A stretch of DNA of 64,000 nt from Anthoceros angustus (Eukaryota > Plantae > Anthocerotophyta). The stretch covers positions 868,001 to 932,000 of the forward strand of contig MU008156.1 in NCBI GenBank assembly GCA_010909165.1. The letters are read 5' to 3'. Both the position numbers and the translations under genes were made by a program. The notes beneath the pieces were generated by a model. It was given only the letters and a program-made list of their open reading frames with translations, did no database searches and was not told where the DNA came from. Positions 3,490 through 39,950 of this stretch are shown one piece after another (the first letter of the stretch is position 1; every line of letters starts with the position of its first letter).

Positions 3490-4860
3490 ATGGCTAGCAC
3501 CTCCTCCCTCGTGGAGAAAAGTCTTCACCACCGATTAAAGAGAAAGATTGATTCAATGGCCAACAGTACCCCGTGTGGCGAGTTCGCATGAAGTCCATAC
3601 TGATAGGTCGAGGTATTTGGAAGATTGTCGATGGAACCCGTTCGAAGCCTACCTCTTCAACCACACCTCCCCCATCAGTTGCTGATATTGAAAGATGGGA
3701 CTACTTGAATGGGATTGCAATTGCCCTCCTCATCAGCGGACTCGACTCAAGCCTGGTGCCCAACATGGAATTCCTCACAGAGGCTTCTGCAATCTGGGAC
3801 CAGTTGTCTAACACCTACAATGTTAACAATGTTCTGACCTTGTCCAGTGTACGGCAGGAATTCAACTCCTTAAAGATGAAGGAGACCGATGCGATTTCTA
3901 CACACACCTCGAAGTTCAGACAGCTGCGAGGGCAGCTCGCCTCCCTTGGCTCAACCATGTCGGAGACCGATGCCGCTGCACAGCTGTTAATGAGCTTACC
4001 ACCGTCTTACCACAACTTCGTGACCAGCCTGATGTTGGTATCGACTCATGGTAAGTCAAGTACACCCTCCACCCTTACAGTGGAAGATATTATCGGTGCT
4101 CTAGATCAGCAGGAGCAGAGCCGCCTTAGCTCTGCAGGAGGGTCCAAGCCCGATGCAGACAGGGCGCTTTCCACCCATTTCGAGCCCGGGAGGAATTCGA
4201 AGGGCAAGGCAAACTTCACCCCTAAAGGTGACTCAACCTCCGCTCTTCCTCGCTGAGCCGGAAACTGCAATTGGTGCGGAGCTGCCGGCCATTGGGCAGG
4301 AGAGTGCCGCAAGAGAGAGGCTAGAGAGCCGCAGAAGGCCGACTTAAGACAGGCAGCCAGTATTGCAGTTAGAGGGAGCGCCAGTATAGCGGAGGCAAAG
4401 ACCGTAAAGATACTTATGGTTTGCCTCAACACCGAGTTGCATCGATGCGGGTGGTATCTCGACAAGGAGCCACCGCCCACATATGCAACAACGATTTCAT
4501 TCACCAAGCTGGATACTCATCCTCTCAGGGAAAGGGTGTTACTTGGTGACGAACGGAGTAGATCCAGCCTGCCAATTATGGGGCAAGGCATTTGCGAATT
4601 TCCCCTCGAGGACGGTTCGGTGCTTACCTTGGAGCCTGTGCTCCTCGTCCCACAAATGGGCAAGAACCTGGTTTCCATGACTCAGCTGCTGAAGCAAGGC
4701 TATCTTGAGATGCTTGTTTCAAGGGGGTCATGCTACTTTTTCAGGACCACAAGTCCTGACTTGTGCCTATTCAGTGCCGTGCCTCAAGACGGCCTGTATA
4801 AGCTTTCATTACCCTTCAGAGGGAGCGCACCAGAGGAGCGCCCATGGGAGATAGCCTCCA
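3490..4860 (+). pseudogene. Copia gag-protease remnant
   Basis: KD*FNGQQYPVWRVRMKSIL (Copia gag N-terminus), Zn knuckle CNWCGAAGHWAGEC after a stop at 4254, frameshifted WYLD-GATAHIC protease. No integrase, RT or RNase H. Confidence 0.9.
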
Positions 4861-6123: not shown

Positions 6124-8270
6124 TCATTGAGGTGGATGATTCTTTTCCAGACCAAGCTCAGTGCGGCTGACGACGCAGGTCTCCACCTGCTTGTAGCTGT
6201 ACCTGGAAGCCAAGAACAGGAAGACGATGACATCCACAGCATCTGTGATGGCCAGGAACCAATAGAAGTTATCCAGTCGGGAGGAGTTGATGTTTGCCCC
6301 GACCCATGCGTGATTCCCGTTCCTCTCTGTGAAGAGGGATGTGAGAGAGATGAAGCCAGTGCTGAGAAAGCTCCCGGCACCTAGAGCTGACAAGTTCATG
6401 GCAGCACCCACAGTGCGCATGTGGTCTGGGGTCTGATCGTAGAAGAAGTCGAATCCAGCCACTATGGCGAACACCTCGGAAACTCCCATGGTCAGGTACT
6501 GAGGAAGAAGTCTGAAGACGCTGAGAGGCAGCCTGGTGCGAGGGTGAGCTTCGAGGCCGTGGTCCCACACATACCGCAGCCTGTGCCTCTCCGTGAGAGC
6601 TGCGCACACCATGGAAAGGCAGCCCAACGCGAATCCGATTGCGAAACGCTGGAGGAGTGTGATCCCTCTGGGGTTGCCAGTGTATTTGCGGGCAAATGGC
6701 ACGAAAACTCTGTCGTAGAGGGGAAGGCCGATCATAACAGTGGCTTGGGAGAAGAGCTGGAAGGAGGCTGGGGGGATATGGAAGTGGGCGCCCAGCTTGT
6801 TGTCCATGGTGCTGCCTTGCTTGGTGAAGAGAGTGTTGAGCTGGGTGTAAGTGGCGAGGTAGACCACATGGGTGACCCAGATCGGGAGTGCCCCGATTAG
6901 CAGCTTCACTTCTTCCACTTGCGTCACAGTGCAGACCTTCCAGGGGTTGCTTCTATCGTCGGCCGTGCCCACAGTGGCCGCCTTGTCAAGGAATCTGGAG
7001 GGCGAACACAGTCAAGATTTTAGTCCACCCAGATGAAGCCGCAAGTACAAGCTTGCAAATGGCCTTCACGGACAGCATTTGGCAAGGGAGAGATGCCAGC
7101 TGGGACTCACGCGAAGGAGTCGGTGTGCAGCATCTGTCTCCTGTTGGGACTCAGATGCTTCCTGCCGGGCAGTTCGTGCAGAAGCTGGGGGTCGTGAGGA
7201 ACCGGGACCCGCCATTTCCTGACTGCAGCAACCAGGACCTGGGCGGCCTGGGTGAAGGGGCTGCCTTCCACCACCTGGTACCTGTACAGGCTGGTTCCAG
7301 TGAAGAAGATTAAGAGGGCAAGAGCAAAGGCGACTGCGGGGATGCCGTAGCCCCAGCCCCATCCCACGAAATCCTGGATGTACACCACCACCGTGACGGA
7401 CAGCACGATGCCCACCGCGATCATCGTGAACCACCAGTTGAAGAAGGAGTTTATGAGCGGGGCCTCCTTCTCGTCCTCCTGGTCGAATTGCGCGGCTCCC
7501 AGGGAAGAAATGGACGGCTTCATCACTCCCGACCCCACAGCCATGACGTAAAGCGAGAGGAAGAAGAAGAGCCTTCTCCTTCCGCCTACGGGCGTGCAGG
7601 GAATGGTGGAGTCGGCCAGGCAGCGGGGCCTCAACCAATCCACCGTCACGCTGCACACGAGCATGATGATCCCCTGAAGTCATGCCATGTCCAGCACGGT
7701 CAGCTCGACCTGCCTTCTGGAGCCCTGATCGATATGGCAATATGGCTGAAACATGCCACAATCACTTACAATCAGGTTGACGAAGCCGAAGACTGCAATG
7801 GTGCTGTAGCGGCCCCAAAATGCATCCGCCAGGAACGCCCCCGGAATGGAACAGAAGAAGACGCATCCCGACCAATTGTTGACGTTCTTGGCAGCCACCG
7901 CCAGACCTTCTCCCAGCACTTCCGTCAAGTAAGTCACGAGATTGGTGGAAACGCCGAAGTAGCTCACCCTCTCTGTCACGTCGTTCCCTGATCATGCGCC
8001 AGATTTTGGTCTCAAACCATCAGCAACATTAGCTCATGGCCCTCAATTTACAAGTCATGAAATGAGAAATGAGATCGCACCCAGGAAGAAGTAGCAAGCT
8101 TTCCATCCTCCCGTGCTAGATTTCCTCGCAGGCCTGCCCTTGTAGTCCACAGAGCCATCCTGAGTAAACTCGGAGTCGCCGAAATTCGCACTCCGATGCA
8201 CGTCATTCCCATTGCGGGCCTCCTCCACTACTGACAGCGGCTTCACAAGAGGAGGCTCAGCGCTCCCCAT
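6124..8270 (-). CDS. NPF: NRT1/PTR family (NPF) nitrate/peptide transporter; 4 exons (8081-8270, 7770-7987, 7111-7673, 6124-6994), about 613 aa
   Basis: EFTQDGSVDYKGRP..TGGWKA, NLVTYL, GAFLADAFWGRY, KPSISSLGAAQFD, FFNWW, GSPFTQAAQV, FLDKAA, CTVTQVEEVK, FFYDQTPDHMR. GT-AG introns give a continuous frame. Confidence 0.95.
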
Positions 8271-10030: not shown

Positions 10031-10552
10031 TCCGAGTCCCAATTGATAAGGACACTCCCGACCCTCATATACCAATTTGCAACCACAACCCACATGCGCA
10101 CATCTGGTGTAAAAACTGTGACCGATCAACCTTTATCTAGGGTTTATTGGCTATGGCGCGTGCTTATCCAAGACCACGATACTCAACCAGTTACACCACT
10201 CCTCTATCGGTGCATGTAACAGCCCAGCACTCTCCATTTTGCCCTAGGGTCACACTCGCAATGGCATATGAGGAGCACGGCAATCGCGACAGTGGAATCA
10301 AACGTTGCAACGAGATCAGCCTCGCTATGGCAAAGGTAGAAGCGATCATGTGGGAAGGCTAGGTGGTCAGTCATATGATGCTTTGGAAGGCTTTGGTATA
10401 CCTCGCTATGGCAAAGGTAGTTGGAAGGCATTGCTATACCTCGCTATGGCAAAGGTAGAAGCGATCATGTGGGAAGGCTAGGTAGTCGGTCATAGGCTTT
10501 GCTATATTAGTTTGTATGGAGATTTAGCCCCTGCCGTACTTTGAAGACGGAG

Positions 10553-13014
10553 AACACGATAATTTTTGAAGGGGGTTAATAATCTCGAAGGGGGTTTTCC
10601 GCAAATAATCTCTGAAGGGGGTTTTTGATGGGCCCTAAAACAGCGTTTTGAAGGCATTGAAAAGCGACTCAAAAAAGGTGTCACCAAAAATTACTACTTT
10701 CCATCCTAGCAATGTTTGTGGCCAATGGTGGTATGAAACTCGAACCTAGGGAAATAATGCAAAGTAGGAGCGGTGAGGAAGGCCGTTCTCGCCGCGACGA
10801 TCAGAACTCGCTTTGGGATGGAAATGTGGTTTTGTTATGACACCACAAAAGCCACGCAGACGGTATTTCCTAACACGTAAACATCAAGAACCGGACTTAC
10901 AACATTAACTCGGGACCCGGAAAAAGCGAGATTTCGGTTCACTCATCCCGAGTTCAATCCATCGTCATCACTTGGTCCACTTCTCCTCCATTGTCATCAC
11001 TATCTTGACGACACTTTCACTCGCAGTTGTATGAAGCCACGCAACTCGAAGAGCTTATCCCTTATCGCTTTTTTGTCCACCGCATACAGATGTTTCCGTG
11101 CGTTCAACACAAACCCATAATACAGGATGACTGTTTCATTCACAAATACCTCCTGTATGTTTTTTAGGTAATGGATCTTATTCCCTTTTTTCCTCGGCAT
11201 TGGACCAGATGGGTTACCACTCTGGCGGACTATGTGTTCCTGCACATATCTCCCTTCATACGCATCTATGTGCTCGGTCCGATACTAGTGGATAAGAAAG
11301 TGAGGTCGTGGTGCGTTTAGCTTCACGTCAATGACCTCCCCAATCCAGAATGGCCTGTTATGCATGTCCGTATTGCACGGCACTGCCAGAAACATCCCCT
11401 CTCGGATTTCCGTTATGTCCCCATTCATCCGTGCCATTTCCGCAGCTTGCCTTCCCGCATTTTGATATGCCCCAAATACATATCACGTGGGAGGTCCCTC
11501 AATAATGCCTCATCTAGCAAAGCTTCATCCGGCACTTGAAGTGGTCAGGCTGTATGATCCACTTCTGCACGTGAAAACCACTTCCAAGGACGCTGTAGCA
11601 CTAGCCCAATGTTATTCTCCACAACGATAGCAATCTCCTTCCGGTCCAACAGGCTTCCCACCACTTATACTCTTCAACAGTCACCTATGGATGCAAATCT
11701 TTTAACCCTTCCTGCAAATGGGCCACACCTTCCATCGGTGATAGGATACCTGCCGTTCCCTTCTTGTCCCCCCCCTAGCTTCACCCGTATGCACCGTAGG
11801 ATGGTGCTAAGGGAGGGCGCCGGTCGACCGGCGCCCTCCCCCAGCATGCCCTGCTCATGGGCGCCGGCCGGCCGGCGCCCCCTAGCACGCCATGGGCGCG
11901 GCCGGCCGCGCCCCCAACACGCCTGCCCATGGGCCGGCCGCCTCCCCAGCACACGCCATGGGCGCCGGCGCCTCCCCTAGCACCGCCCATGGGCGCCGCC
12001 GCCGCCTCCCCTAGCACACCCATGGCGCCGGCCGGCGCCCCCAACACGCCTGCCCATGGCGCGGCCGGCCGGCGCCCCCACCAACACGCCATGCCTTGCC
12101 CATGGCGCCGGCCGGCGCCTCCCCTAACACCCTGCCCTACCCATGGGCGCCGGCCGGCGCCTCCTCCTAGGCTGTCTTCAAAAATAAATATTTAGCGCCT
12201 CAAGAGTATTCAACCATGGACTGTTGGTCTAGTGTTTGGGAAATAAGTGTAGTAATGAATAGGTTCGTGTTCAAACCTCGTGCCTCCTCAAGTTCAATTT
12301 TGTTGATTTTAAGGATGCTTGCATGGGCGCATGGGCAACTAACTTTGTTCATTTTAAGGACGTTGGCATTGCCTTAAAGCCCAAGTGGTTGCATTGAGTG
12401 CGGAAGGTTGAAGACCACGATGGCGACCTTTTGGATGAGGGTCGGAGACCCTAGATCTTTGTGTGGCGATCGACACCGTCGGGGCCCAAGAATGATACTA
12501 TTGAAGGCGAGCAAGCAATGGAGGAGAACGACAACTTCGAGGCGGAGGATATGGACCGCCTCGAATATGGCGGTGGTACTTGACTCGATTTGGCGCAAGG
12601 CATGGATGAGTCGCCGGCCGCACTCTTGAATGGCTATTGTCGATGCCGATGACCACTTCCTCCTTGATTGTTTGTTGCAATGTTCTCACGACCACTTAAA
12701 TGAGACTCCTACAGAGATTGTTTTCATTGTGTTCCACCACTTGAAAGTAAAAGTTTTCGGTTGTAATAAACATATGAAAATGGCAGCCCTCTATGCATTC
12801 TACTAAACGCAACGGGCCCACACCCTCATGCTCCGGTTCTCGGGTGTAGACTTGAAAGTGCATCTTTTATCAAAGATATGACCTCGAGAAAGGGTGTGTG
12901 CATTATCAAAGTAGGGCACATATGCTGTTCTAGGTAAGGTGTTCTTCGTGACAAGGGGGTGATGTCTCGGCCGAAGGGGGTCAGTATATCCCCCCCTTCA
13001 AAAATTATCGTGTT
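10553..13014. mobile_element. TIR DNA transposon copy 1 (2462 bp), AACACG termini, non-autonomous, carrying a degenerate unknown gene on the minus strand
   Basis: TIR AACACGATAATTTTTGAAGGGGG / CCCCCTTCAAAAATTATCGTGTT, 4-bp TSD GGAG (10549-10552 and 13015-13018), subterminal AAGGGGGT repeats. Confidence 0.9.
11813..12168. repeat. GC-rich degenerate minisatellite (~30-35-bp units, CATGGGCGCCGGCCGGCGCCTCCCCTAGCA-like) inside the TIR element; also at ~22160-22505
   Basis: Repeated ccatggg/cgccggcc motifs. Confidence 0.85.
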
Positions 13015-13083
13015 GGAGGTTTTGAGTGCCGGGCATGCGAGAGTCCTTCTGGTAGTGTGCAATGCAATCAGGGGAATTATTAC

Positions 13084-13493
13084 CCACTTCGATCATGTGC
13101 TATTACAATATTATCCTTAGAAGGAAATACAACTTATGTATACATAGAAACCACTTCGATCATGTGCTATTACAATATTATCCTTAGAAGGAAGTACAAC
13201 TTATGTATACATAGAAACGAATTTTATTTAAGTCCACTAAGCTATTACAATATTATCCTTAGAAGGAAGTACAACTTATGTATACATAGAAACCACTTGG
13301 ATCATGTGCTATTACAATATTATCCTTAGAAGGAAGTACAACTTATGTATACATAGAAACCACTTGGATCATGTGCTATTACAATATTATCCTTAGAAGG
13401 AAGTACAACTTATGTATACATAGAAACCACTTGGATCATGTGCTATTACAATATTATCCTTAGAAGGAAGTACAACTTATGTATCATAGAAAC
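13084..13493. repeat. 67-bp tandem repeat, about 6 copies, one unit containing the SINE 3' end
   Basis: ccacttSgatcatgtgctattacaatattatccttagaaggaagtacaacttatgtatacatagaaa repeated. Confidence 0.9.
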
Positions 13494-13657
13494 GAATTTT
13501 ATTTAAGTCCACTAAGGACGGATTTCCGTCATGGGCCTTGGTGCTTAACAACTTGTACTATGGTGTGCCTAAGCTACTTGCACCAAGGGCATCCACTCCC
13601 TTTAGGCACCCCATCTAAGTATCGATCCAAGCTCGGGATGCTTAATCACGGCGTTCT
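13494..13657 (-). mobile_element. 5S-rRNA-related SINE-like element, copy 2 (uninterrupted)
   Basis: Minus strand AGAACGCCGTGATTAAGC...GATACTTAGATGGGGTGCC...GACGGAAATCCGTC...AAATAAAATTC, highly similar to the joined copy 1. No clear TSD. Confidence 0.7.
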
Positions 13658-14056
13658 TATAAATGTGTGTCCATTTGGCCTAATCCATTTGGACACACTA
13701 AAGGATTAGCCTCAAACTAAGTCAAGACATTTCTATTTTTTTTCATGTTTTCATTATGTTTGAGTCTCATGATATCAACTCTTCTTGGTAGACTTACATA
13801 TATTTTCCTTCTACTCCCATTCACCAAAAGATATCAACTTACTTTTATTTAGGGGAAAAAAATATGTATGCCTTCACTAATCTTCATTCTTCTTTGAAGC
13901 TAAAGCTCTTGGAAATATCTATAACATATTCCACTACACGATCTTTTATTACAACTCCATGTACACACCAAGGTTCATGAGAGCCTACAATGTTATCTTA
14001 TACCACATTTATCACATGACAATACATAGAAAAGGAAGAAAAATTTTGATTGTTGT

Positions 14057-14983
14057 CTATTGCGGATGATAAATAGGTTGAATAATACAGGTCCTACAAA
14101 TCGGACAATTCATATTGGAATATAGCCACTTTGCGATACATTCTATATGAAATGGATGTCCACAAGAAGGACAAAGGTATATGATATGTCCTAAAGGAGG
14201 GCATTCTAAACATATTGAACACATTTCATGTGTAGAGGAAATAGGCATTAATTTTATATCTTTCTCGCAAACTCCCATGAACTTATGATTACCCACCATA
14301 GCATGTTGCAAGTAGGCATTCCATGGTAAAGAAATAACAGTCATAGGTACAATATTTGGCGCTGGCGCTGGAACGTAAAATGCTGTATGATAATCTTTTG
14401 TATTCAATCCACTTAAGAATGCCGTTTCATACATCTCTTCTTCAATCTCTTCTTGCCTTACTACACATGCCATATCTTTAGTACTAGATAGATGAAAATG
14501 TAGGAGCACCATACGCATCCCGTATTGGTATCGACCACATCCGGCTCCTTCATTTCCTCCTCCTTGATATGAAGCATCTACGTTTTCAGCTATTTGAATT
14601 CTTGTTTCATTTTCTTGTTCTTGATTTAAACCATGTGCGTCTCCAACTATAACACCACGCGTTTGATTCAGTTCTCGTTCTTGATTTGAAGAATGACCAA
14701 TTATTTGATAATCTATTTGATCAAATTCTCGTTCCTGATTTGAAATTATTTGATCTACTCTTTGATTTAATTCTCTTTCATGATTTGAAGCAATTTGATC
14801 CCTTCTTTGATTAAATTCTTGATCCTGACTTGAAGCATTTTCAATACGTTGTAGATTAAGCTCTGTCGATCGTTGGTCCTTGGTGCGGGATGTAACGTGC
14901 GATATCACCTCTTTCATAATAATAAAAATTATTATAATAAAAATTATAATGAGAATAGTCATCATTATCATCATCATCATCAT
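14057..14983 (-). CDS. ATL-like RING-H2 E3 ubiquitin ligase (N-terminal TM, NQERELNQ repeats, C-terminal RING-H2), copy 1
   Basis: Poly-Met/Ile hydrophobic N-terminus, GLD-like motif GVCEKDIKLMP, CSICLE...CGHPFHIECIAKWL....CPICR, intronless. Confidence 0.85.
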   Translation of the reverse strand: MMMMMIMMTILIIIFIIIIFIIMKEVISHVTSRTKDQRSTELNLQRIENASSQDQEFNQRRDQIASNHERELNQRVDQIISNQEREFDQIDYQIIGHSSNQERELNQTRGVIVGDAHGLNQEQENETRIQIAENVDASYQGGGNEGAGCGRYQYGMRMVLLHFHLSSTKDMACVVRQEEIEEEMYETAFLSGLNTKDYHTAFYVPAPAPNIVPMTVISLPWNAYLQHAMVGNHKFMGVCEKDIKLMPISSTHEMCSICLECPPLGHIIYLCPSCGHPFHIECIAKWLYSNMNCPICRTCIIQPIYHPQ

Positions 14984-15104
14984 GTCTATGATAAATAGAG
15001 ACTCTCGTTGTGTCTAATTTAAGAAACTATCTTGCCCTTTAAAAATAGGGATACGGCTTGTAGATTAATGTGCCTCAACCAATCGTTAAGCTTTAAAGTC
15101 GCAG

Positions 15105-15400
15105 GATAATGTGCCTGAACCTATTGCCAAAGTCTAAAGTCTTCGAATGAATTTTATCTCTACTAGTTCCTAATATCCTCAATTGATTGTTTGAGATTGT
15201 GTTTTGTCTAATCCATCATGGTTTTGAGCACGTTTATTCTTGATTCAAACAAGATAATGTGCCTGAACCAATTGCCAAAGTCTAAAGTCTTCGAATGAAT
15301 TTTATCTCTACTAGTTCCTAATATCCTCAATTGATTGTTTAAGATTTTGTTTTGTCTAATCCATCATGGTTTTGAGCACGTTTATTCTTGATTCAAACAA
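15105..15400. repeat. 148-bp tandem duplication upstream of RING copy 1
   Basis: gataatgtgcctgaacc...ttgattcaaacaa occurs twice here and once in each paralogous upstream region. Confidence 0.85.
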
Positions 15401-15781
15401 GATTCTCAAGTGCCTGTCAAGTTTACTCTTCCGCATAAGTATCACATTTATGAGTTTTATCTGCAAAGCTCAAGGGTCTTTTACAAATCTATCATCCATA
15501 TGATAAATAATCACTTAAGCTCTTCTCATTTATATATAGGTAAGTAGAATTACTTTTCCTTTCAAAAAAGAGCTTTAACTTAGCAACTACTAAAACCACT
15601 CTCTTAATGCATTTGATAGAGAAAGTAGATAGCATCGTTTAGACACTATTACTAAATACTATGACATACTATATGTATGGCATGCCACATGGCCTATCAA
15701 TGAGAACTATAGTTAGACTTTACTATTTTGTAATTTGTACATGCTTTACAAGTGGTTCACATCTTTCTTCAAGAGCACATA

Positions 15782-16099: not shown

Positions 16100-18188
16100 A
16101 CATTGAAAGTAAGATCCAAAAATTTGAAGATGATCGATAGAAGGCTTTTTATCAGTAAATGCTTCATAGGGAGTTATATCTTGAACAACATACGTAGACA
16201 ATCTATTAATGAGGCAAATGGCTATAAGAATAGCTTTTGCCCAATAAACCTTGGTAAGTGTGCTTGGGATAATAAACAGCTTGCGATCTCGTATAGGCAT
16301 AGATTCTTATTTTTCGCTACGCCATTTTGCTGAGGAGTGTGTACAACAGTGAGTTGTTGAGCTATGCCTTCAGCTCAACAAAACTCAGCTAATACATGTG
16401 ATGTAAACTCGCCACCATTGTCGGAACATAAAGTCTTGAGTTTTTTATATGTTAATCTCTCTACCCAAGTCATATAGTCCTTAAAGAAATGATGAGCATC
16501 ACTCTTGTATTTAACGATGTAGGTGAGGACGAAACAAGAGTAGTTGTCTATGAAATTCAAAAAGTATCTACTACCACGAAAAGAGGGTTTGGAGATAGGA
16601 CCACAAATGTCTATATGCACAAGCTCAAAGTGATATAGCCCTTTGTGGTGAGATGTTCTGAAAAGGAGCCTGATGTCTTTTGGTAATGACACAAACTTCA
16701 CACCAAGGTAGGTGTTCAATCTTGGAGAGAGAGAGAGTTTCATAGAGGTTTCCCTTCGACATTTGGAGTAATTTTTGACTATTTGGATGACCTAGACGAC
16801 AATGCCAAAGCATAGTAGGTGTTGGTGTAACAGAATCTTGGGACGCTACATTGATGGAATGTGTGGAACCCACTTGGACTGACAATTTGTAAAGTCCATC
16901 TTCTAATGTGCCTGTGCACATGGCATATGACTTATTGGTGACATAAATAATGAAGCAACTTCCTGCATGGAGTGTAATTTGCATAGTATGTTCTAGACAT
17001 AAGCTAGCGGTAGACACTAAGTTCTTATACGTGGATGGTACATGAAGGACGTTATTTAAAAGAAGAAGTTCACCTGAATCGCATCTAAGAACAACATGAC
17101 CGACTCTATCTATGGGGAGGTTGTGGTCATCACCCAAGAGAACAGACTCATGTCCTTTGGTTGGGAAATAAGTCTCAAAAGAGTTTTTGTTGTAAGAGTT
17201 GTGGGAGGTTGCTCCACTGTCTAAGTACCAACAGGGGTCAGAAGGCTCAAATGATGCCAAGTAGACAGTGAGAGCTAATGGTATTGTTGAAGACTATTTC
17301 TTTATAGCAACATGTGCTCCAGGTGGGGCCTCTTTCTTAGGCTCGCCATTCTTCTTTTTCCTACAGTCCTTCTCCATATAGTTTGGAATTCTGCACAAAT
17401 AATTCCATCCTTCTTGTTACCTCTTGTAGGTGTAGAAGAAGATGAAGTCTGCCCAATAAAAGTATATTGTATAAGATTGGTAGGTCGTGAAGAGGGTCTT
17501 CTATCGCAGCCTTGGCCTCAACCTCGACCTCTCCCTCTACCTCTTCTTGTGTACATTACTTGCTCTCTGATTATGGAATCTGGAAATGTGCCGACGACTT
17601 GACTCCTCCTGGATCAATGCTTCAATTAATTCATTGACACTAATGTCCATCATTTCGGAGTCATATTTGCGCATGTTTTTATGAGCATTCCTCAACACGG
17701 CATTCTATGTTGTCACAAATCTATAAGAGGGTGATAAGGAGGATAAGAGAGCAACAAAGCAATTTTACTCAAAAAAGCTTAGTGCTGAATGCAGCTTCAA
17801 GTTGAGATCTTTCCAAACGAAAAACACTAATGTGATGTTTGATTGTATTTGATTCCTACATCTTCAAATTATGGAAATCACGGGTAATTGTCATCAAACT
17901 CATAACATCCTTCGAGGAGTATAGCTGAGTAAGATGGTCTCACATTTCGTTGAAGGAGCTTGCTTCACCGATTTGCCTTACCATGTGTTGTGAGAGGCCA
18001 CTAATTAGGATATCTTGAGTCTTCTCGTCTTTGGCGTCTCAGGTACGTTTACTCTCAAGACCTCAGATGAGGCGTTCATTGGTTCTATTGACTATATCGC
18101 ATAATTCTCGGTTGCATACAACTCCTCTCATTAGTAGGTGCCAGACGTCATAGTCTTGGCCTTCGAATCTATCCTTGGGTGCAAGCAT
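16100..18188 (-). pseudogene. Copia gag-protease-integrase remnant (no RT/RNase H)
   Basis: MLAPKDRFEGQDYDVW, WYLDSGATSH, LWHCRLGH, ELVHIDICGP, LCSDNGGEF, TPYEAFTDKKPSIDHLQIFG, with many stops and frameshifts. Confidence 0.9.
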
Positions 18189-20683
18189 GGTTAGGTAAAC
18201 CACTTTATGTGGGGATGGACGCAACACGTATATATGCCCACATGTGGACATATTTACCTTCCAAAAATTCTTTCCAATAGAATGATTGTTGAAATGATTC
18301 AAAATTTTTTCCCATAACTAAGAGCAAGGCAACAAGTCCACACTAAAATGCTCATAGTTAAAGGATATGATTTGTACATAAGGTATTTAATTGTTTGATC
18401 ATGGATGGACAAGTGAACTTTGGACACGTGAACTTTGGACACAAAAAGTGAGCACAAGAGACACAACCCAAGTTCATTGGAATTTCAAACCATCCATCAG
18501 ATGAACATAGAATACGAAAAGTGAGTCTTTGTCACTCAAGTTTGAACTTGTTCAAATTTCAAAGTTGGAATAGCGAGAATTTCAAAGTTTGGCTTTAGCG
18601 GAATTTCAAAATTCATACAAGTGTACACTTATTTGTGACCATGCCTCACTTTTAGTGTTCTATGTCGATTAATGGATCGTTTGAATTTCAAATGTACAAG
18701 TTGACGGTCACAAACAAGTGTACACTTGTATGAATTTCAAATTTTTGTTTAGCGAATTTCAAACCAGTACCCAAGTTGCTATGGCATGTTTTTATGAGAG
18801 CATAACGCCATCTTCATGCTCATGAGCCCTTTCACCATCTTGCTTTGCGCTAAGGGCACTCGGTCCGTGTGTGAACAACACCATAATTTTGAAGGGGGGG
18901 AATATACAAACCCTTCGAGGGAAAAATAACACCTTGACGGAAAAGGCACCATCCTCAAATTGTGTGAAAGCAGTTGGTTTGAAAATACGTAGACACCCTC
19001 CGTTCATATAAATCTATAAGCGGATCTCCACGTACATCCATCGTTACCGGATGGGCCATGTGTCTCCACTTCATCGACCAAGTGAGCAACCATATGGACT
19101 TGAATGTCGAAAAACTTTGGCGGCATGATAATTTTGAAGGGGTTAATAATCTCAAGGGGTTTTCCGCAAATAATCTGAAGGGGTTTTGATGGGCCCTAAA
19201 GCAGTTTGAAGGCATTCGGAAAACACTCGAAAAAAGGGTGTCACCAGAAAATTACTACTTTCCATCCTAGCAATGTTTGTGGCCAATGGTGGTGAAACTC
19301 GAACCTAGGGAAATAATGCAAAGTAGGAGCGGTGAGGAAGGCCGTTCTGCCCGGGCAAACGTAAACTCGGTTTTGGGATGGAAATGTGGTTTTGTTATGA
19401 CACCACAAAAGCCACAGACGGTATTTCCTAACACGAAACATCGACCGGACTTACAACATTAACTCGGGACCCGGGAAAAACGAGATTTCGGTTTCACTCA
19501 TCCCGAGTTCAATCCATCGTCATCACTTGGTCCGACTTCTCCTCCATTGTCATCACTATCTTGATGACACTTTCACTCGAGTTGTATGAAGCCACGCTCA
19601 TGAGCTTATCCCTTATCGCTTTTTGTCCACTCTGAGATGTTTTATGTTCAAACCCATAATCTGGGATGGTATTTCATTCACAAATACCTCCTGTATGTTT
19701 TTAGGTAATGGATCTTATTCCCTTTTTCCTCGGCATTGGACGGATGGGTTACCACTGGCGGACTATGTGTTCTGCACATATCTCCTTCATACGCATCTAT
19801 GTGCTCGGTCCGATACTAGTGGATGAGGTCGTGGTGCGTTTACTCTCAAGACCTCGGATGAGGCGTTCATTGGTTCTATTGACTATATCGCATAATTCTC
19901 GGTTGCATACAACTCCTCTCATTAGTAGGTGCCAGACGTCATAGTCTTGGCCTTCGAATCTATCCTTGGGTGCAAGCATGGTTAGGTAAACCACTTTATG
20001 TGGGGATGGACGCAACACGTATATATGCCCACATGTGGACATATTTACCTTCCAAAAATTCTTTCCAATAGAATGATTGTTGAAATGATTCAAAATTTTT
20101 TCCCATAACTAAGAGCAAGGCAACAAGTCCACACTAAAATGCTCATAGTTAAAGGATATGATTTGTACATAAGGTATTTAATTGTTTGATCATGGATGGA
20201 CAAGTGAACTTTGGACACGTGAACTTTGGACACAAAAAGTGAGCACAAGAGACACAACCCAAGTTCATTGGAATTTCAAACCATCCATCAGATGAACATA
20301 GAATACGAAAAGTGAGTCTTTGTCACACTCAAGTTTGAACTTGTTCAAATTTCAAAGTTGGAATAAGCAGGAATTTCAAAGTTTGGCTTTAGCGGGAATT
20401 TCGAAATTCATACAAGTGTACACTTATTTGTGACCATGCCTCACTTTTAGTGTTCTATGTCAGTTGACGGGATCGTTTGAATTTCAAATGTACAAGTTGA
20501 CGGGTCACAAACAAGTGTACACTTGTATGAATTTCAAATTTTTGTTTAAGCAGGAATTTCAAACCCAGGTACCCAAGTTGCTATGGCATGTTTCTGATGA
20601 GAGCATAACCTGCCATCTTCATGCCTGCGAGCCCTTTCACCATCTTGCTTTGCGCTAAGGGCACTCAGTCCCCGTGTGTGAAC

Positions 20684-20760
20684 AACACCATAATTTTTGA
20701 AGGGGGGGAATATACAAACCCTTCGAGGGAAAAATAACACCTTCGACGGAAAAGGCACCA
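20684..20760. mobile_element. Orphan AACACC-type transposon terminus downstream of the Tnp2 transposase 3' end (noisy duplicate at ~18877)
   Basis: AACACCATAATTTTTGAAGGGGGGGAATATAC..CCCTTCG has the same layout as the right end of the 2.4-kb elements. Confidence 0.7.
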
Positions 20761-20829
20761 TCCTCAAATTGTGTGAAACAGTTGGTTTGAAAATACAGAC
20801 ACCCTCCGTTCATATAAATCTATAGCGGA

Positions 20830-20937
20830 TCTCCACGAAGTACATCCATCGTACACTGGATGGGCCATGTGTCTCCACTTCATCGACCAAGTGAGCAACC
20901 ATATGGACTTGAATGTCGAAAAACTTTGGCGGCATAA
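20830..20937 (-). pseudogene. CACTA Tnp2 transposase, C-terminal (DUF4218-like) piece
   Basis: MPPKFFDIQVHMVAHLVDEVETHGPSSVRWMYFVE joins in frame to 23355+ once the TIR element is removed. Confidence 0.85.
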
Positions 20938-23354
20938 AACACGATAATTTTTGAAGGGGGTTAATAATCTCGAAGGGGGTTTTCCGCAAATAATCTCTGA
21001 AGGGGGTTTTTGATGGGCCCTAAAACAGCGTTTTGAAGGCATTCCGGAAAACAGCTCCGAAAAAAAGGGTGTCACCCAGAAAAATTACTACTTTCCATCT
21101 AGCAATGTTTGTGGCCAATGGTGGTCGCAAACTCCAACCTAGGGAAATAATGCAAAGTAGGAACGGTGGAGAAGGCCGTTCCTGCCGGGCAAGAACGACT
21201 GTAAACTCAGTTTTGGGATGGAAATGTGGTTTTGTTATGACACCACAAAAGCCACGGACAGGTATTTCCTAACACGTAAACATCAAGAACCGGACTTACA
21301 ACATTAACTCGGGACCCGGAAAACGAGATTTCGCCACTCATCCCCGTAGTTCAATCCATCGTCATCACTTGGTCCAGCCTTCTCCTCCATTGTCATCACT
21401 ATCTTCAGCGACACTTTCACTTGTTGTATGAAGCCACGCAACTCGCAGAGCTTATCCCTTATCGCTTTTTGTCCACCGTGACATGACAGTGTATGCTCAA
21501 CACAAACCCATAATAGTGATGACTGCTTCATTCACAAATACCTCAGTATGTTTTTAGGTAATGGATCTTATTCCCTTTTTCCTCGATTGGACCGATGGGT
21601 TACCACTCTGGCGGACTATGTGTTCCCACATATCTCCTTCATACGCATCTATGTGCTCGGTCCGATACTAGTGGATAAGAAAGTGAGGTCGTGGTGCGTT
21701 TAGCTTCACGTCAATGACCTCCCAATCCGTAATGGCCTATGCATGTCCAGACAGCCGCGCCGTAAACATCCCTCTCGGATTTTATGTCCCCATTCATCCG
21801 TGCCATTTCCAGCTTGCCTTCCCGCATTTTGATATGCCCCAAATACATATCACGTGGAGGTCCTCAATAATGCCTCATCTAGCAAAGCTTCATCCGCACT
21901 TGAAGTGGCCGTATGATCCACTTCGCACGTGAAAACCACTTCCAAGGACGTGTAGCACTAGCCCAATGTTATTCTCCACAACGATAGCAATCTCCTTCCG
22001 GTCCACAGGCTTCCCACCACTTATACTCTTCAACATACCTATGGATGCAAATCTTTTAACCCTTCCCGCAAATGGGCCACACCTTCCATCGGTGATAGGA
22101 TACCGCTGCTCCTTCTTGTCCCCCTAGCTTCACCAGATGCACCGTAGGATGGTGCTAAGGGAGGCGCCGGCCGACGGCCTCCCCAAAGATGCCTCGCCAT
22201 GGGCGCCGGCCGCCGGGCGCCTCCCCTAGCACACCTGCCCATGGCGCCGGCCGCCGGCCGCCCCAACACGCCCGCTGGGCGGGCGCCGGCCGCCTCCCTA
22301 GCACCGCCCATGGGCGCCGGCCGCGCCTCCCTAGCACACCCCGCCCATGGGCGCGCCGGCCGCCCCTAGCACCCCATGGGCCGGCCGCCCCCAACACGCC
22401 CGGCCGGCCGCCGCCGGCGCCCCCACCAACACGCCATGTTTGCCCATGGCGCCGGCCGGCGCCTCCCCTACACCCTGCCACCCATGGGCGCCGGCTGGCG
22501 CCCTCCTAGGCTGTCTTCCAAAAAAATATTTAGCGCCTCAAGAGTATTCAACCATGGACTGTTGGTCTAGTGTTTGGGAAATAAGTGTAGTAATGAATAG
22601 GTTTCGTGTTCAAACCTCGTGCCTCCTCAAGAGTTCAATTTTGTTGATTTTAAGGATGCTTGCATGGGCGCATGGGCAACTAACTTTGTTCATTTTAAGG
22701 ACGTTGGCATTGCCTTAAAGCCCAAGTGGTTGCATTGAGTGCCGAAGGTTGAAGACCACGACCGCGACCTTTTGGATGAGGGTCGTGAGACCCTAGATCT
22801 TGTGTGGCGATCGACACCTGGACCGGGCCCAAGAATGATACTATTGAAGACGAGCAAGCAATGGAGGAGAACGACAACTTCGAGGCGGAGGATATGGACC
22901 GCCTCGAATATGGCGGTGGTACTTGACCTTTCGCGCAAGGCATGGATGAGTCGCCAGCCGCACTCTTGAATGGCTATTGTCGCCGATGACCACTTCCTCC
23001 TTCAGCTTGTTTGTTGCAATGTTCTCACGACCACTTAAATGAGACTCCGCTAATGCAGATTGTTTTCATTGTGTTCCACCACTTGAAAGTAAAAGTTTTC
23101 GGTTGTAATAAACATATGAAAATGGCAGCCCTCTATGCATTCTACTAAAGCATAACGGGCCCACACCCTATGTGCTCCAGTTCGGTGTAGACTTGAAAGT
23201 GCATCTTTTATCAAAGATATGACCTCGTAAAGGGTGTGTGCATTATCAAAGTAGGGCACATATGCTGTTCTAGGTAAGGTGTTCTTCGTGACAAGGGGGT
23301 GATGTCTCGGCCGAAGGGGGTCAGTATATCCCCCCCTTCAAAAATTATCGTGTT
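20938..23354. mobile_element. TIR DNA transposon copy 2 (2417 bp), inserted into the Tnp2 transposase
   Basis: Same TIRs as copy 1, 4-bp TSD ATAA (20934-20937 and 23355-23358), near-identical internal sequence. Confidence 0.9.
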
Positions 23355-25410
23355 ATAACCCTCTCTAACCGCACTAAGGTCTCTTGTGCATGTAGCCTCA
23401 TCGCAGGAATCTCCGATGGGTCAACCTCCCTTGTCCTAGCCATCGAAATAACCGTGCCAAGCCGACTATGGGCTAATAGACCTCCCGCGGTAAAGCTCCC
23501 CGCAATGCAATTGGGAGATAATACTCCATAACTTTTTTCCAGTCATGTGTTTTAAGGCCAGATAGTTTCCCGTCTGCAAACCTCTGTCCGATGTATGCGG
23601 CAAACCCAGATGGTGGCCTAATCAACTTCAGCTGCTCATGCACCATCGCCATGGCCTCCGGCTCCACAACATACATCGCATCAACATATGTAGCATCTGC
23701 GGCTGTGCTCGACGGCCAGAGGTCTGGTTTGGTGTTTACATCATAATCTGCCATGTCCCGCCGACAGGGGAGATCATCCTTAACACCAGATAAGAAACCA
23801 TAAAGTGAAACCACAATGTTCTTCAAAATGTGCATGCAATCTTTAAGATCACCCACTAATAGATGTTGCGGATTCAGTGATAGGGGATTAGAGCACATAT
23901 TGTAACCCAAAAACAAGGCTGAAGGAATAAATGAATGATAAAGCGAGAGGTCAGGGAAAGAATAGTACCCTTTTGTAAGGGAGGTAGTCGTAGGCAGCCC
24001 ATTTCTTCCACACATTCCACCGCCATTGCTCCATATGGTCTTGTGGCGTGGCAGACTCCCATGCATCCATCTCGTCTACAATCATGGCAGTCGTTATCCT
24101 CATTGGAGGCGCGACCGTCTCTACAACTCCGTTGAAAAGATGGATGTCTTGGACCCTAAGGTCATGGTCAAGAGGGAGCAACTTCCGGGTCCCTGGGTAA
24201 ACCACTTTGTGAAGATGAGGCGAGTGTCGGGCCTCGAGGTGCTTCCAACATGGGGGGCACGCCATATATCCTGAAGTATGGAGGCCACATAAAGTTCCCA
24301 TGCCCGGGTAGTCTGCCATCATGCAGAGTTGCGCGGCTCGCAGCCTAAAAATGCTCTTTGGATGGCCAATAGGGTACGAGGCATCTACGGCTTGTATGCC
24401 ATGCCATAACTCCCGCATGTCCTCGTACAACGGCGCCAGATATACATCAAGATTGCATGGCTTATGTGGCCCAGGCACCAACACAGCCGTCAATATGTAT
24501 TCCTTCCGTATGGTCTTCCAAGGGGCCAAATTATAGTTCAGAAGTAGAACTATGCTTCTGTCCGAAGGGATTAATGCCATCAGTGCTTAAGCCAAATCGG
24601 AGATTACAGTCTTCCTCCCCGAAACCATCAATCGCATCCGGTGTAGCCCATGCGGGCATATCTGCCATTAGTGCCATTTTACCGGTCTCACTTCGGAGTT
24701 GCCGATGGGCCACACGATCGCGGGCCAGCTGTGGAATAACGAACATATGTCGGCACCTCTTCAAAAGGGGGAAGTACCACATGACTTTGCTCGGAGTGCG
24801 TTCCTTCTTCACAGTGTCGGCCCGGTAACGAGGAAGGCCACATTTCAAGCAATTTTTCTCCCTCGAATATTGCCCTCTAAACAGCATGCACCCTTTAGGA
24901 CATACATGGATCCGCTCACATCCCATCGACACACATGAAATAATGCCCAAAGCTTCCGCTCGGCTCGCCGAAAGGCAATTCCCCTCTGGTAATATTGCCG
25001 TATGCAAAGCTTGGAAAAGGGCATCCATAGCAGCGTGGCTCACTCCGTACTTTGATTGTATTTCGAGGACAATCATAACGGCCGAGAGAACATCCACTTT
25101 GGTACCGGCGAACAAAGTTCGGCCGGCTGCCACCAGGAGCTTGCCCAAATCACCGGCACCATCCGCACCCACTCCATCAAAAAAACTAGAGTCCACTCGT
25201 TCGGCAATGTCATCTGCACTTCCTTGGATGTGCCATATTCATCCTCTCCTAGCGGGTCCATAATGTCTGCATCGGCGGCGCCACTATCCTCTTCCTGGTT
25301 ATCATTGCTTTGCATTTGCCCCCCCTCGAGCGTGGCAGGTTGGCCACGGGCCCGTATCCCGGACCCCAATGGGCGGCCGAATTGGTCGTAGTATCAAGCT
25401 TCTGGGCTAT
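23355..25410 (-). pseudogene. CACTA/En-Spm Tnp2-family (Transposase_21-like) transposase core, frameshifted
   Basis: RIHVCPKGCMLF..CLKCGLPRY, NLRFGLSTDGINPFG, NYNLAPW, VPGPHKPCNLDVYLAPL, ADYPG, DCMHILKN, LSGLKTHDW. Confidence 0.9.
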
Positions 25411-25469
25411 GCACTTCCACAGGGAGTTAAGAAATAAGTAGGGTTTGTTTTTAGGATTGAAGGATAAAT

Positions 25470-28400
25470 AAAGGCGGAAAGGAGGAATAAATTGGGGTGG
25501 CGCTTGGACGAGGCTCGGAGTATACTCGGACTGGAGTGAACAACGGACCCCGGTACCACTATGGCAAGCTCGGACTACGCCGAGTAACGGATAAGTCCGG
25601 AACCCACCCAGTGTCAAAACAGGATAAGTACGCCAGTGAAAGTAACCTAGGAGCGAGGCGTGAGGATGACGAGGCGGCGCCACGTGGACGGCCCCGAGTG
25701 GAGGTCGGCATGCAGAGGTCAGACCGTAACCTGCCGAGGCCGCAGGCAGTATTCACGCCCGCGCGCGCGCGAAGGCCGCAGGCCGGTAAGCGAGGGTCGA
25801 GTAAGCCGCGCACTCGCGCTACGGACAACGAAGAGGCGCCCAGCTTTCCACAAGCGCGCCAAGGAGGAGGTCACCGCAGCCTGCATAATCCTCACGGTCC
25901 CTTGCGCCCGCAATCCGCTCGGGCGCTTTTGGGCGCCTACCGGCAGAGCGCGCAAGCAACGCGCGAAGGAGGAACATCGTGCCGACCGCCAGCAGCCTAC
26001 AAGAACAAGAGGAGGAGGAAAGCAATGGCACCCAAAAGCCGACGGAAGTCTGGGAGCCATGGACCGTGGAGCGCAACATTGTGACCCGCGCTATCCGGAC
26101 TGGGCCCCGGCCGGAGGAAGCAGGGAATTGGTGCGGAGTGGCATCCGGACGTGTTCCAAATGGTCTCGACCTTTGACAACCTACTCTAGTCCGGAGTTTG
26201 CCCGAAGATGCCGGGCGATCAACAAGGAGGTCCGATCCAAGAACCTCCGGAGGACCCGAGGCGATGGACCTTGAGGTCCCGAGGATGGCCTACAACCGCC
26301 CAAGGAGGAAGAAGGGGCGGTGCCGAGCCCCTTAAGGCGAAGGGAAGATAGGGCCGCCACGGGCGCGCCGAGGCTCGAACGCAGGACAACCAACGGATGG
26401 TTGATATCCGATCCGCCGGATACCGAGTAAGGGCGGTAGCCGGATCATTGTCCATTGAACTCGCCACCAAGGTGGATCACCTTGGTGATAACCTGCTGGT
26501 ATTCTCGCATGCGCCCAGCTGGGAAGAGAGCGACCGGGAAGGATTATCTTCGCCCGCCTGGGCCAGAGGCACGCAAGCTAAGGAGCGAGAAGCCTCGCTT
26601 ATCGACCCCATACCGATTCATGTATGGGGACATTTCGAGCCCCTCAAGGAGGAGAGCTTGAACGGGCGCCAAGGGCCGGAGGCCCCGCCAAGTAGAGCGT
26701 GCAAGGGCGCCTGAGGTGGGGGTCGCCCTTCAAGACCAAGCGACTCGGAGGAGGACGATCGAGGATTCCTGACCCCATACGCTGAGCGAACCCCTCACCA
26801 CCTGTGGAAGTTTGGGAGGAGATTCCCCTTCCTCCTTTTGCCCTGCCGCCCGCATGAGGGAGCCGATGCCGAGGGCGCTGGCCCGCACCGGCATGCAGCC
26901 CAACAACCACGACGGCCGCCGAGCCCCGACGAACTCAACGGGAGCCAAGAGGCGGAAGACGGTGCCGCTTACCAACGCAAAGACCTCGGTGCCGGACTTA
27001 CCCACGGAGTGGCAAGAGGTCAAGAGGCGGTAAGGAGGGTAAAGGGACGTGGCCCAAGGAGCAGGAGGTCACCGCAGCACACCTCGAGCCGGCCCCTGCC
27101 CCGTGAAGGGGCAAAAGAGCTTGCTCCCGACCCCCTCACCTCCTCCGAGCCCTGTGAGAAAGAGGGCACAAAGGAGTTAGAGGCCAAGAGGGCCAAGAGG
27201 GTGAGACTGACCACCACTGTGACCCGAGGGTCCCGATTAGGTCCGAGAACCCACCGACTTACTCGGCGGTATGGAGGTCCTGGATCGAGAAATGCCGGCC
27301 CCACTACGGACTTTGTGGGGGCCTCACTGCGGCCGTGGAAGAAACACGGCGAAGTCCTGCTACGGCCATGGACGGAATGCTTTGGGGTCTCGTGGTACGG
27401 AGAAGACCTGTGAAGTGGAGGCCACCCGAGGAGGATGGTGGAACCCAAGAGCAAGTGAAGGCGGCCGAGGGGCAAAGGAAAAGGCGGAGTCCTCGCCGAT
27501 CGAGGAAGGGAAACGCCTGGCGGAGCGCGAGGCCCGCGGTTCAAGCAGACTGGGTTCTTCACCGCGAACACCTGGCAAGCTCGAGGCCAAGCGGGCGGAG
27601 GACCTTGCAGCGAAGAGGGAAGCGCAGCAGAGGCGGAAGAGGCCCGGCACAAGCAGAGAGCTCGGACCGGAGGCGGCCCCAGAGGCCAAGGGCGAGGCCT
27701 GTAAAGGCGGAAAGGAGGAATAAATTGGGGTGGCGCTTGGACGAGGCTCGGAGTATACTCCGACTGAGTGAACAACGGACCCCGGTACCACTATGGCAAG
27801 CTCGGACTACGCCGAATGGGATAAGTCCGGAACCCACTCCAGTCAAATAGGATAAATCGCCGAAAGTAACCTAGGAGGCGGGCGTGAGGATGACGAGGCG
27901 GCGCGCGTGGGCGGCCACAGAGTGGAGGTCGGGCATGCGGTAGGCGGGCCGTAACCTTGCGAGGCCGTTATAGCGGTATTCACGCCCGCGGCTGCGCGGC
28001 GTAAGGCGAGTGGAGCGTGGGGGTCGAGTAAGCCATGCGGACCCACAGCGATTCTGGACAGCGCCTTCAGCCCGGTTACTTCCTGGCGCGGCCAAGGAGG
28101 AGGTCATTTGCTGTGACCTCGAGACAATCCTCACGGTCCCTTGCGCTCCATAATCCGGCTCTCTGGCTATCTTTTGGGCGCCCGATCGGCTTAGCGCGTG
28201 GCGCACCGTCAAGGTTGGAGCGTGACAGCGGCGAAGGAGGAACATCGTGCCGGCGGACTCGGCCAGCGGCTACAACAAGAGGAGGAGAAAGCAATGGCAC
28301 CCAAAAGCCGGTGATGCAGGAGCCATGGACCCTCGTGGGCGCAACATTGTGACCGGCGCTATCCGGACTGGGCCCCGGCCGGAGGCGGGGATTGGTGCGA

Positions 28401-31400: not shown

Positions 31401-32822
31401 CCGGAACACTTATGGCGGAGGAGTATCGGGTGCTCGGGCACCGTGGAAGAGGCAATTCAACAAGTCGATTCGGACTTTGCCTATTACCACGCCGAGCTCC
31501 CTGATGAAGCCTCTCGGCGGCGGAGGCCGGACCACAGTCGGACCGGAAGGCTCGAGAAGGAGATGAAGGCCACGGGGCAGCCAGGGACCCTAGTGGCCTG
31601 TTTGAAGATAGCGAGGCGGAGGCGGCGGAGGCGGAGCGGAGGAGGCGGCGGATGCGATCGAGGTAAGCACCCGCACCTCACCATGGAAGGAGGAGGGCCA
31701 GCGAGTCACTTGAGCGATCGGGAGCAGTGGAGGACTTGAGGAGAGCCACGGAGGTCCGTGAGGGAGGAAACCCGGGTGGGCGTGAGTCGGACTTTGTCCG
31801 GACCCGGAGGCCGGACCACAGTCGGACCTCGGTAATAAGTCCGGACCACAGTCGGACCAGTCCGGACCACGTGGGACCAAGTCCGGACCACGAGTCGGAG
31901 TGTCCGGACCACAGTCGGACCACAGTCGGACCTGGCCGGCGGACCCGAAATAAGCGGACTCACGAGTTGAGTCGAGACAGACCTCGAGGCCTGCGGCGAT
32001 GAGGAGGAGCCCCGCCGACTTACGCTAGGGCCAGAGTGGACCGGCGAAGGACCGAGGGGAGGAGGATGGCGTCGTGGTAGCGGTTGTCGACCGCCGTGTA
32101 ACTGATTCGGGAGAGGAGGGCCCGCCTCACGGATCATCCGATTGGGTGCACCACAAGCTGTCGGGGACGAAGTTGGACCACCCATTCGGCGGGGCCAGGA
32201 CCTTCCACAGTCGGCGAAGGAGATAGGGGAAAATAGGGTAGGCGGCCGATTAGGGTATATGCGGCTATCATTTCGAGAATAGGGGTGTAATAAAGGCGCC
32301 TTGGCGCGATATAAGAGTGCTCTAGTAAAGCATCTTTCTCTTGGTGTTGATCGCGTTCTTGCGGACCTTTGTGAGTCTTCTTGCTAACGTGAGTCTGAGT
32401 CAGCGAGCCGGACTCGGGAGATTGATCAAGGTCCGGTGGCGGACTTAGCGTTGTGGTGTGTGTGCGGGGAAGGGTGGCGGTGACGTGCTCGTCCGGGAGC
32501 CAGCGGTCACCGGCATTTGGGCGTGTGGCCGGAGGAACTCGGGAGGCGTGTAGAGCACAGGCGGAGGAGGCGGAGCAGCGGAGGAGGTCGGGCACGTCGT
32601 CTTTTCTAAGGCGAAGAGTGTAGCGTGAGGAGAGAGGAAAGGGCGGATCGTGAGGATGTATGTGAGCACGTCTGGGCCTTGAGCAGGTCCTTAGTACTCT
32701 GAACTGTCTGTGAAACGTTGTGAGTAGTTAGGAGTATGTGTGTGTTGAGGCGGAGCAGCTGGGGCCGGTAGGAATCAGCAGTGGCAGGCCTATCATTCCC
32801 TTGGAGCGGACTTCTTCCTACA
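25470..32822 (-). mobile_element. Gypsy/Tat-like LTR retrotransposon remnant (one LTR, PBS-like site, GC-rich internal region with degenerate antisense coiled-coil ORF pieces), inserted in the Tnp2 gene
   Basis: Minus-strand LTR TGTAGG...CCCCGACA (32159-32822) followed by TGGTGCACCCAATCGG. Tnp2 coding flanks both sides. No gag-pol motifs recognised. Internal noisy duplications. Confidence 0.55.
31790..31935. repeat. Short CCGGACCACAGTCGGA-type repeat cluster
   Basis: Multiple ggaccac/gtcgga units. Confidence 0.75.
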
Positions 32823-33030
32823 GCGACCGGATTATGCCTTGGTAGCCGAAAAGTCACGCCACAAGCTGTGCGCATTATAAATTCTAAATGGATCCGGTTC
32901 TCAGGGTGCAATCCCTTGGTGGAATTGCCTGAAACAGTGCTGCCATGCAACATCGCCAGGCAAAGGCTTCATCTTCTTACATTTGCGGCAGGGGCACCAT
33001 ACAATGCACTTTTCCATCGCGGACTCTTTC
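32823..33030 (-). pseudogene. Tnp2 transposase N-terminal 'transposase-associated' Zn domain (duplicated at ~34045-34240)
   Basis: MEKCIVWCPCRKCKKMKPLPGDVAWQHC fits the CPCxxC...V..H pattern of CACTA N-termini. Confidence 0.7.
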
Positions 33031-36136: not shown

Positions 36137-36384
36137 CGGACAGTCGCGCGTACCCTAAGCGTTTGTCGCAGCAAACCTGGCTATCGTCCAATCCATCCAT
36201 TTGACATTACGCTTGGGCGCTAGAGTAGAGGTTGAGCGTGGGGCGTGTTTGCAGCATGCGTATGGTGCTTGTACCAGATAGGGCTGGCAATGCGGCAGCT
36301 TGATGCCAGTCGGTACTACGCGTTTGTTACAAAATAGTAAAGGACATACGCCCCAAGGGGAAGGGGAAATGGTTGACTACTTTG

Positions 36385-39918: not shown

Positions 39919-39950
39919 GGCTGGAGGGAGCCATGAGAGGAGCGATTGCG

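Follow-up and report, generated by a model that had tools for sequence, protein, structure and literature searches.

AACAC-ended transposons with 4-bp target-site duplications beside a Tnp2-type transposase gene in Anthoceros angustus: a probable divergent lineage of plant CACTA/EnSpm elements

The DNA considered here (the window) is a stretch of 64,000 nucleotides from Anthoceros angustus (assembly GCA_010909165.1, contig MU008156.1, positions 868,001 to 932,000). A RING-H2 zinc-finger gene segment is present three times (13706–15757, 41516–43468 and 45652–43869), with one copy inverted, and RING-H2 zinc-finger ORFs are found at 14057–14983 and 41872–42816. Pieces of host genes (a papain-type protease and a POT/PTR2 transporter) and copia-type gag/pol fragments also occur (495–1433, 6124–6972, 3573–4256 and 16625–17260). 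About 1 kb past the 3' end of the first RING-H2 gene is a small mobile element, with a tandem repeat (13084–13516, period about 67 nt) immediately to its right. A second copy of this element interrupts a Tnp2-type transposase gene some kilobases further on.

The two small elements belong to a transposon family with AACACG ends. A preliminary description of this DNA had proposed two elements of ~2.4 kb that have 23-bp terminal inverted repeats in common, each with its own 4-bp target-site duplication (GGAG and ATAA). A direct reading of the sequence bears out both points, and for the second copy the duplication is also supported by a restored reading frame. The ends, boundaries and duplications are the following:

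10553–13014: copy 1 of the AACACG element, 2462 bp, with inverted ends that mark the exact limits of its homology with copy 2
20938–23354: copy 2 of the AACACG element, 2417 bp, in the DUF4218 part of the Tnp2 gene
10549–10552: left target-site duplication of copy 1, GGAG, which recurs at 13015–13018
13015–13018: right target-site duplication of copy 1, GGAG, from direct reading
20934–20937: left target-site duplication of copy 2, ATAA, from direct reading and a protein-level empty site
23355–23358: right target-site duplication of copy 2, ATAA, from direct reading and a protein-level empty site
10553–10575, plus strand: left terminal inverted repeat of copy 1, AACACGATAATTTTTGAAGGGGG, 0 mismatches
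12992–13014, minus strand: right terminal inverted repeat of copy 1, 0 mismatches

Each copy opens with AACACGATAATTTTTGAAGGGGG and closes with the exact reverse complement of this sequence. This 23-mer has four perfect occurrences in the window, which form two inverted pairs (0.00 expected from shuffles), and in both copies the inverted repeat is flawless over 23 nt, with none beyond. The junctions of copy 1 read GACGGAG-AACACGATAATTTTTGAAGGGGG on the left and CCCCCTTCAAAAATTATCGTGTT-GGAGGTT on the right, and those of copy 2 read GGCATAA-AACACG and CGTGTT-ATAACCC. Alignment of the two copies together with 100 nt of flanking sequence showed that their similarity is bounded precisely by the termini and that the flanks are unrelated.

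The chance of finding two independent 4-nt direct matches is about (1/256)^2. If the ends are drawn one or two bases away, as at CACG...CGTG, the direct repeats vanish from both copies, and a 4-bp duplication is therefore the sole consistent reading. The two sequences duplicated, GGAG and ATAA, reveal no evident target consensus from the two complete copies. No paralogous empty site for copy 1 or copy 2 was found within the window. An exact scan of metagenome contigs with the terminus gave zero matches, and a full-text literature search found no paper containing the terminal sequence. The transposon family is real, and so is its non-canonical signature of ends and duplication.

The gene into which copy 2 has inserted encodes a transposase and is split into pieces, all on the minus strand:

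24534–25238, minus strand: piece with the first catalytic Asp region (RFGLSTDGINPFG), from homologue alignment and motifs
23954–24586, minus strand: core piece with the second Asp and CPPC, matching PF02992 (Transposase_21) with E 1.7e-35
23476–24075, minus strand: piece with the MHxExN motif, here DCMHILKN, from homologue alignment and motifs
23357–23542, minus strand: piece ending ...TLVRLERV at the copy 2 insertion site, from comparison with homologues
20813–20935, minus strand: piece resuming MPPKFFDIQVHM..., matching PF13960 (DUF4218) with E 3e-9

The pieces on either side of the frameshifts and of the insertion were searched separately and set beside homologues. The downstream piece (20813–20935) has MPPKFFDIQVHMVAHLVDEVETHGPSSVRWMY as its first residues, and 18 homologues run across the insertion point with the pattern ..LC.LE.IFPP.FFDIMVHL..HL..E....GPV.YRWMYP, gap-free. 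Removing copy 2 and one ATAA joins ...LERV directly to MPPKFFD..., with the frame and motif spacing exact. Since the homologues have no gap at this point, the inserted block corresponds to the element plus 4 bp, and since the removal restores the transposase motif, the boundaries of the element and its 4-bp duplication are independently confirmed.

The transposase retains the motifs DGINPFG, ADYPG...CPPC and MHxxKN. However, the D.MH.E.N motif reads DCMHILKN, so that the presumed catalytic Glu is replaced by Leu, and because of this replacement, the frameshifts and the insertion of copy 2, this copy of the gene is dead. In full-length relatives, residues ~87 to ~760 can be aligned with 25220–20819. 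When 1.84 billion representative proteins were searched exhaustively and without a profile, 510 matches were obtained at E<=1e-10. Among the best 150 of the 510, the named matches are plant Tnp2 proteins; named relatives come from the liverwort Riccia sorocarpa, Tanacetum (“CACTA, En/Spm sub-class”), rice, lettuce, Asparagus and Cicer. The best matches, to plant CACTA/En-Spm transposases of Riccia, Tanacetum, rice and lettuce, have 42–46% identity, and none of the 510 exceeds about 46%. In a quick tree, the transposase falls in no supported clade and has a branch of 2.0 changes per site versus a median of 0.44, a placement that is unreliable in that the query was paired with another long branch. 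Part of this branch length must be due to decay and assembly error. Neither AACAC ends nor clear termini were found at the loci of the nearest relatives (Riccia sorocarpa and two metagenome contigs). Directly upstream of the transposase N-terminus is a G+C-rich tandem array (25469–30314) with a period of about 2.2 kb and many long spurious ORFs on both strands.

Inside their terminal repeats, the small elements have a regular arrangement of short motifs, shown here for copy 1:

10568–10622, plus strand: left subterminal array of three direct GAAGGGGGT motifs, starting at 10568, 10587 and 10614
12953–12981, plus strand: two AAGGGGGT motifs next to the right end, opposite in orientation to the one within the right terminal repeat
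11856–12169: G+C-rich minisatellite (tandem repeat) inside copy 1, period about 31–43 nt

Going inward from the left end, AAGGGGG occurs three times in direct orientation, at nt 17, 36 and 63, while the right end has one AAGGGGG within the terminal repeat and, further inward, two in inverted orientation. The window contains GAAGGGGGT eight times versus 0.6 expected, and all eight are within copies 1 and 2. This layout agrees with the earlier observation of subterminal motifs in both orientations, and the view that a CACTA-like subterminal architecture is here combined with non-canonical ends and target duplication is likewise supported. The minisatellite is the part of the element with the lowest similarity between the two copies.

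No ORF in the 2.4-kb element exceeds 123 aa. An ORF-like stretch on the minus strand (11003–11479) matched nothing in the Atlas and nothing convincingly in Pfam, and no recognisable protein coded by the 2.4-kb elements was found in the ORF list, Pfam or the Atlas. The 2.4-kb element is therefore non-autonomous. A tblastx comparison against the window detected no coding sequence common to copy 1 and the region 34600–36136, where the ORFs at 35220–36136 had no Pfam match.

A fifth terminus, AACACCATAATTTTTGAAGGGGG, is found at 20684, close to the end of the transposase gene, and has a tandem duplicate at 18877–18966:

20684–20773, plus strand: terminus and subterminal region of the transposase-bearing element (AACACCATAATTTTTGAAGGGGGGGA...), identified by its match to the right end of the small elements

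Of the first 26 nt of this terminus, 25 are the same as in the small elements at their right end. The resemblance continues inward, where nt 27–90 align with the small elements with a score of 7 (shuffles, -9.9 +/- 3.9; 0 of 2000 as good), and inverted CCCTTCG motifs lie at equal distances in the two ends. The initial AA is kept in all five termini, the AACACC end included, with CAC at positions 3–5, and the terminus pattern over the small and large elements is AACAC[CG]ATAATTTTTGAAGG. Homology to transposases stops about 130 nt inside the AACACC terminus, within DUF4218, and none is found beyond its outer (left) side. Since a terminus nearly identical to those of the small elements thus bounds a gene with Tnp2 (PF02992) and DUF4218 domains, the CACTA affinity of the family is better founded than before. 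Neither a scan that allowed up to 3 mismatches nor gapped short-word blastn revealed a second end of the large element in the window, and no CAC...GTG inverted pair with a 3-bp duplication was found to enclose the transposase there. No DNA transposase besides Tnp2 was detected in the window among ORFs of at least 190 aa, a screen that a frameshifted one could escape. Judged from its sequence, the locus would most simply represent an AACAC-ended Tnp2 element with an internal deletion and several frameshifts, in which a non-autonomous relative is nested.

The two copies had been described as near-identical, and recent activity had been suggested on that basis. As assembled, however, they are 90.5% identical (blastn), and identity of 100% is limited to the outer ~100 nt at each end. 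They differ by 185 substitution columns and 57 indel events, and transitions and transversions are practically equal in number (93:92). For the first ~740 nt, a three-way comparison is possible, thanks to another, incomplete copy:

19124–19824: partial third copy, comprising the first ~740 nt, in a tandem repeat (18042–19824) that matches 19833–21676

Private substitution columns number 27 in copy 1, 31 in copy 2 and 38 in the duplicate at 19124–19824, a star-like distribution, and the duplicate often sides with copy 1 against copy 2. Such a pattern suggests identical sequences that each carry a few per cent of assembly error. The comparison thus points to assembly noise as the dominant source of the differences between the copies, and for that reason the age of the elements is not readable from the 90.5% identity. 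The proposal of recent activity is left unsupported by differences that are star-like, with transitions about equal to transversions; the real divergence of the copies may be small and recent activity may have occurred. The position of copy 2 inside a transposase gene of its own family indicates that the small element moved after that copy of the gene existed, and no finer date follows from it.

The partial copy at 19124–19824 may well be an assembly artefact. Head-to-tail duplications of 1.2–2 kb with 80–94% identity are found elsewhere in the window too: in addition to 18042–19824 versus 19833–21676, there are 36375–38160 versus 38148–39920, 32161–33370 versus 33370–34607, and 25469–27476 versus 27702–29700. 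They suggest a noisy and possibly artefactually duplicated long-read assembly rather than old duplications, a reading that rests on the star-like differences in the first of these pairs (18042–19824 and 19833–21676).

The combination of features in this family has to be compared with several known transposon groups. A 4-bp target duplication is made by Chapaev, which has CA/CAC-type ends, and by Sola (Sola1–3), an alternative already named in the preliminary description, while piggyBac and Kolobok use a TTAA target and were rejected, since the duplications here are GGAG and ATAA. Chapaev has in common with the present family both the duplication length and the broad transposase group. However, the transposase described here scores best with plant Tnp2 proteins, and Chapaev would be set apart on this ground. 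The ends alone do not separate Sola from the family. The sole transposase linked to the ends is nevertheless Tnp2, as judged from ORFs of at least 190 aa in a frameshifted assembly; to our knowledge, there is no Sola model in Pfam.

Chapaev and Mirage are filed under EnSpm in Repbase (PMC4455052), and the Chapaev families in the papers retrieved are from animals (PMC4079192, PMC3014272). Ginger1 makes a 4-bp target duplication as well, with 5'-TG...CA-3' ends and an integrase-like transposase, and GingerRoot a 6-bp one (PMC6839031). Ginger and GingerRoot were rejected because of their TG..CA ends and 6-bp duplication, respectively, as opposed to AACAC...GTGTT and 4 bp in this family; no integrase-like transposase was seen here. 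The EnSpm-Mirage-Chapaev-Transib (CMC or CMCT) group has mostly 5'-CA..TG-3' ends, duplications of 2–5 bp and a DDE transposase with a C(2)C motif after the second Asp, and EnSpm itself has 5'-CAC..GTG-3' ends and 3-bp duplications (Kojima, PMC12730594). The presence of ADYPG...CPPC and a duplication of 4 bp are in keeping with this wide group, although the ends of the family do not begin with CA.

The likeness to plant CACTA/En-Spm elements is closest. It includes a linked Tnp2 transposase (PF02992 and DUF4218) with DDE-region motifs and CxxC, found at a single broken locus, the 2.4-kb elements themselves having no recognisable coding. It also includes short (23 nt) inverted ends with CAC within the terminus, short subterminal motifs in direct and inverted orientation with the same layout at the end of the large element, and non-autonomous forms that share only their ends with the coding element, as in the internally deleted and Pack-CACTA derivatives. 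Unlike CACTA elements, which end in CACTA or CACTG and make 3-bp duplications, the family ends in AACAC(G/C) and has 4 bp in both complete copies, and its transposase, on a long unplaced branch, is just 42–46% identical to the nearest relative. Autonomous CACTA elements also carry a second, TnpA-like gene; the ORFs considered in this regard, at 35220–36136, had no match in Pfam. A literature search covering CACTA, Chapaev, 4-bp duplications and bryophytes found no precedent.

The 2.4-kb units are cut-and-paste DNA transposons that probably belong, as non-autonomous members, to a divergent CACTA/EnSpm lineage of land plants in which the ends are AACAC and the duplications 4 bp long. They would be moved in trans by the Tnp2-type DDE transposase of this lineage, the termini of which may be written as 5'-AACAC(G/C)ATAATTTTTGAAGGGGG. 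The 23-nt inverted ends would serve as recognition sites for the transposase, and the subterminal GAAGGGGG arrays are probably bound by the transposase or by a helper protein, much as TnpA binds its motifs in En/Spm. Excision would be followed by reinsertion at a 4-nt staggered cut, giving the 4-bp target duplication, and the stagger would then be a property of the enzyme, with a duplication length that is measured on two complete copies. Whether a land-plant Tnp2/CACTA branch has changed both its ends (to AACAC, with CAC two bases in) and its cut (to a 4-nt stagger) is evenly balanced. All in all, the family seems to be an aberrant branch of a transposon superfamily already known, rather than a new kind of element or mechanism.

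Several observations weigh against this assignment. The two defining features of CACTA elements, CACTA ends and a 3-bp duplication, are absent, and the branch of the transposase is very long and unplaced. The link between the transposase and the AACAC ends comes from a single broken locus, with frameshifts, the Glu-to-Leu change, a truncated DUF4218, a single end in the window and a tandem duplication, and a rearrangement could have brought an unrelated terminus beside a CACTA transposase. The AACAC elements would then belong to another superfamily with 4-bp duplications (Sola, Chapaev proper, Ginger1 or Academ), and the AACACC end would be a leftover of nested insertion or rearrangement. A 4-bp duplication and non-CACTA ends are as expected there, the locus at about 18–21.7 kb is rearranged or duplicated, and the transposase is cut short within DUF4218. 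This origin is nevertheless unlikely. The inner side of the 20684 terminus reaches transposase coding sequence in about 130 nt, whereas the outer side lacks the remainder of the transposase, so that at least two extra events would be needed; no other DNA transposase is found in the window among ORFs of at least 190 aa, and the TG..CA ends of Ginger are a misfit (PMC6839031).

It might also be supposed that these are ordinary CACTA elements with a 3-bp duplication, the boundaries of which have been misplaced by two bases, given that CAC occupies positions 3–5 of the terminus and that the subterminal repeats are arranged much as in CACTA elements. This can hardly be right: ends drawn at CACG...CGTG leave GAA/TTG in copy 1 and AAA/TTA in copy 2, which are not direct repeats, the AA is conserved in five of five termini, AACACC included, and the protein-level empty site shows that the insert consists of the element and 4 bp more. 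Equally improbable is the idea that there is no mobile element at all and that the two units reflect segmental duplication or an assembly artefact, even in a noisy assembly with several tandem duplications of 1.2–2 kb. Segmental duplication is ruled out by the way in which similarity stops exactly at the inverted ends with unrelated flanks, and each copy also has a separate 4-bp duplication, while copy 2 cleanly splits a conserved reading frame.

Non-autonomous DNA transposons are classified by their terminal sequence and duplication length (PMC4455052), and annotation that relies on CACTA ends and 3 bp would overlook a Tnp2-type family that ends in AACAC and duplicates 4 bp, or label it “unknown”. 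If true, a divergent CACTA/EnSpm lineage of this kind is thus relevant to repeat annotation in bryophyte genomes. Shifts of duplication length within superfamilies are documented for hAT (5–8 bp), PHIS (0–3 bp) and CMCT (2–5 bp) (PMC12730594), and the family would add a plant case to them, as a plant counterpart of the shift from 3 bp to 4 bp between EnSpm and Chapaev. It would also offer a natural system for finding out which part of the CMC transposase sets the duplication length.
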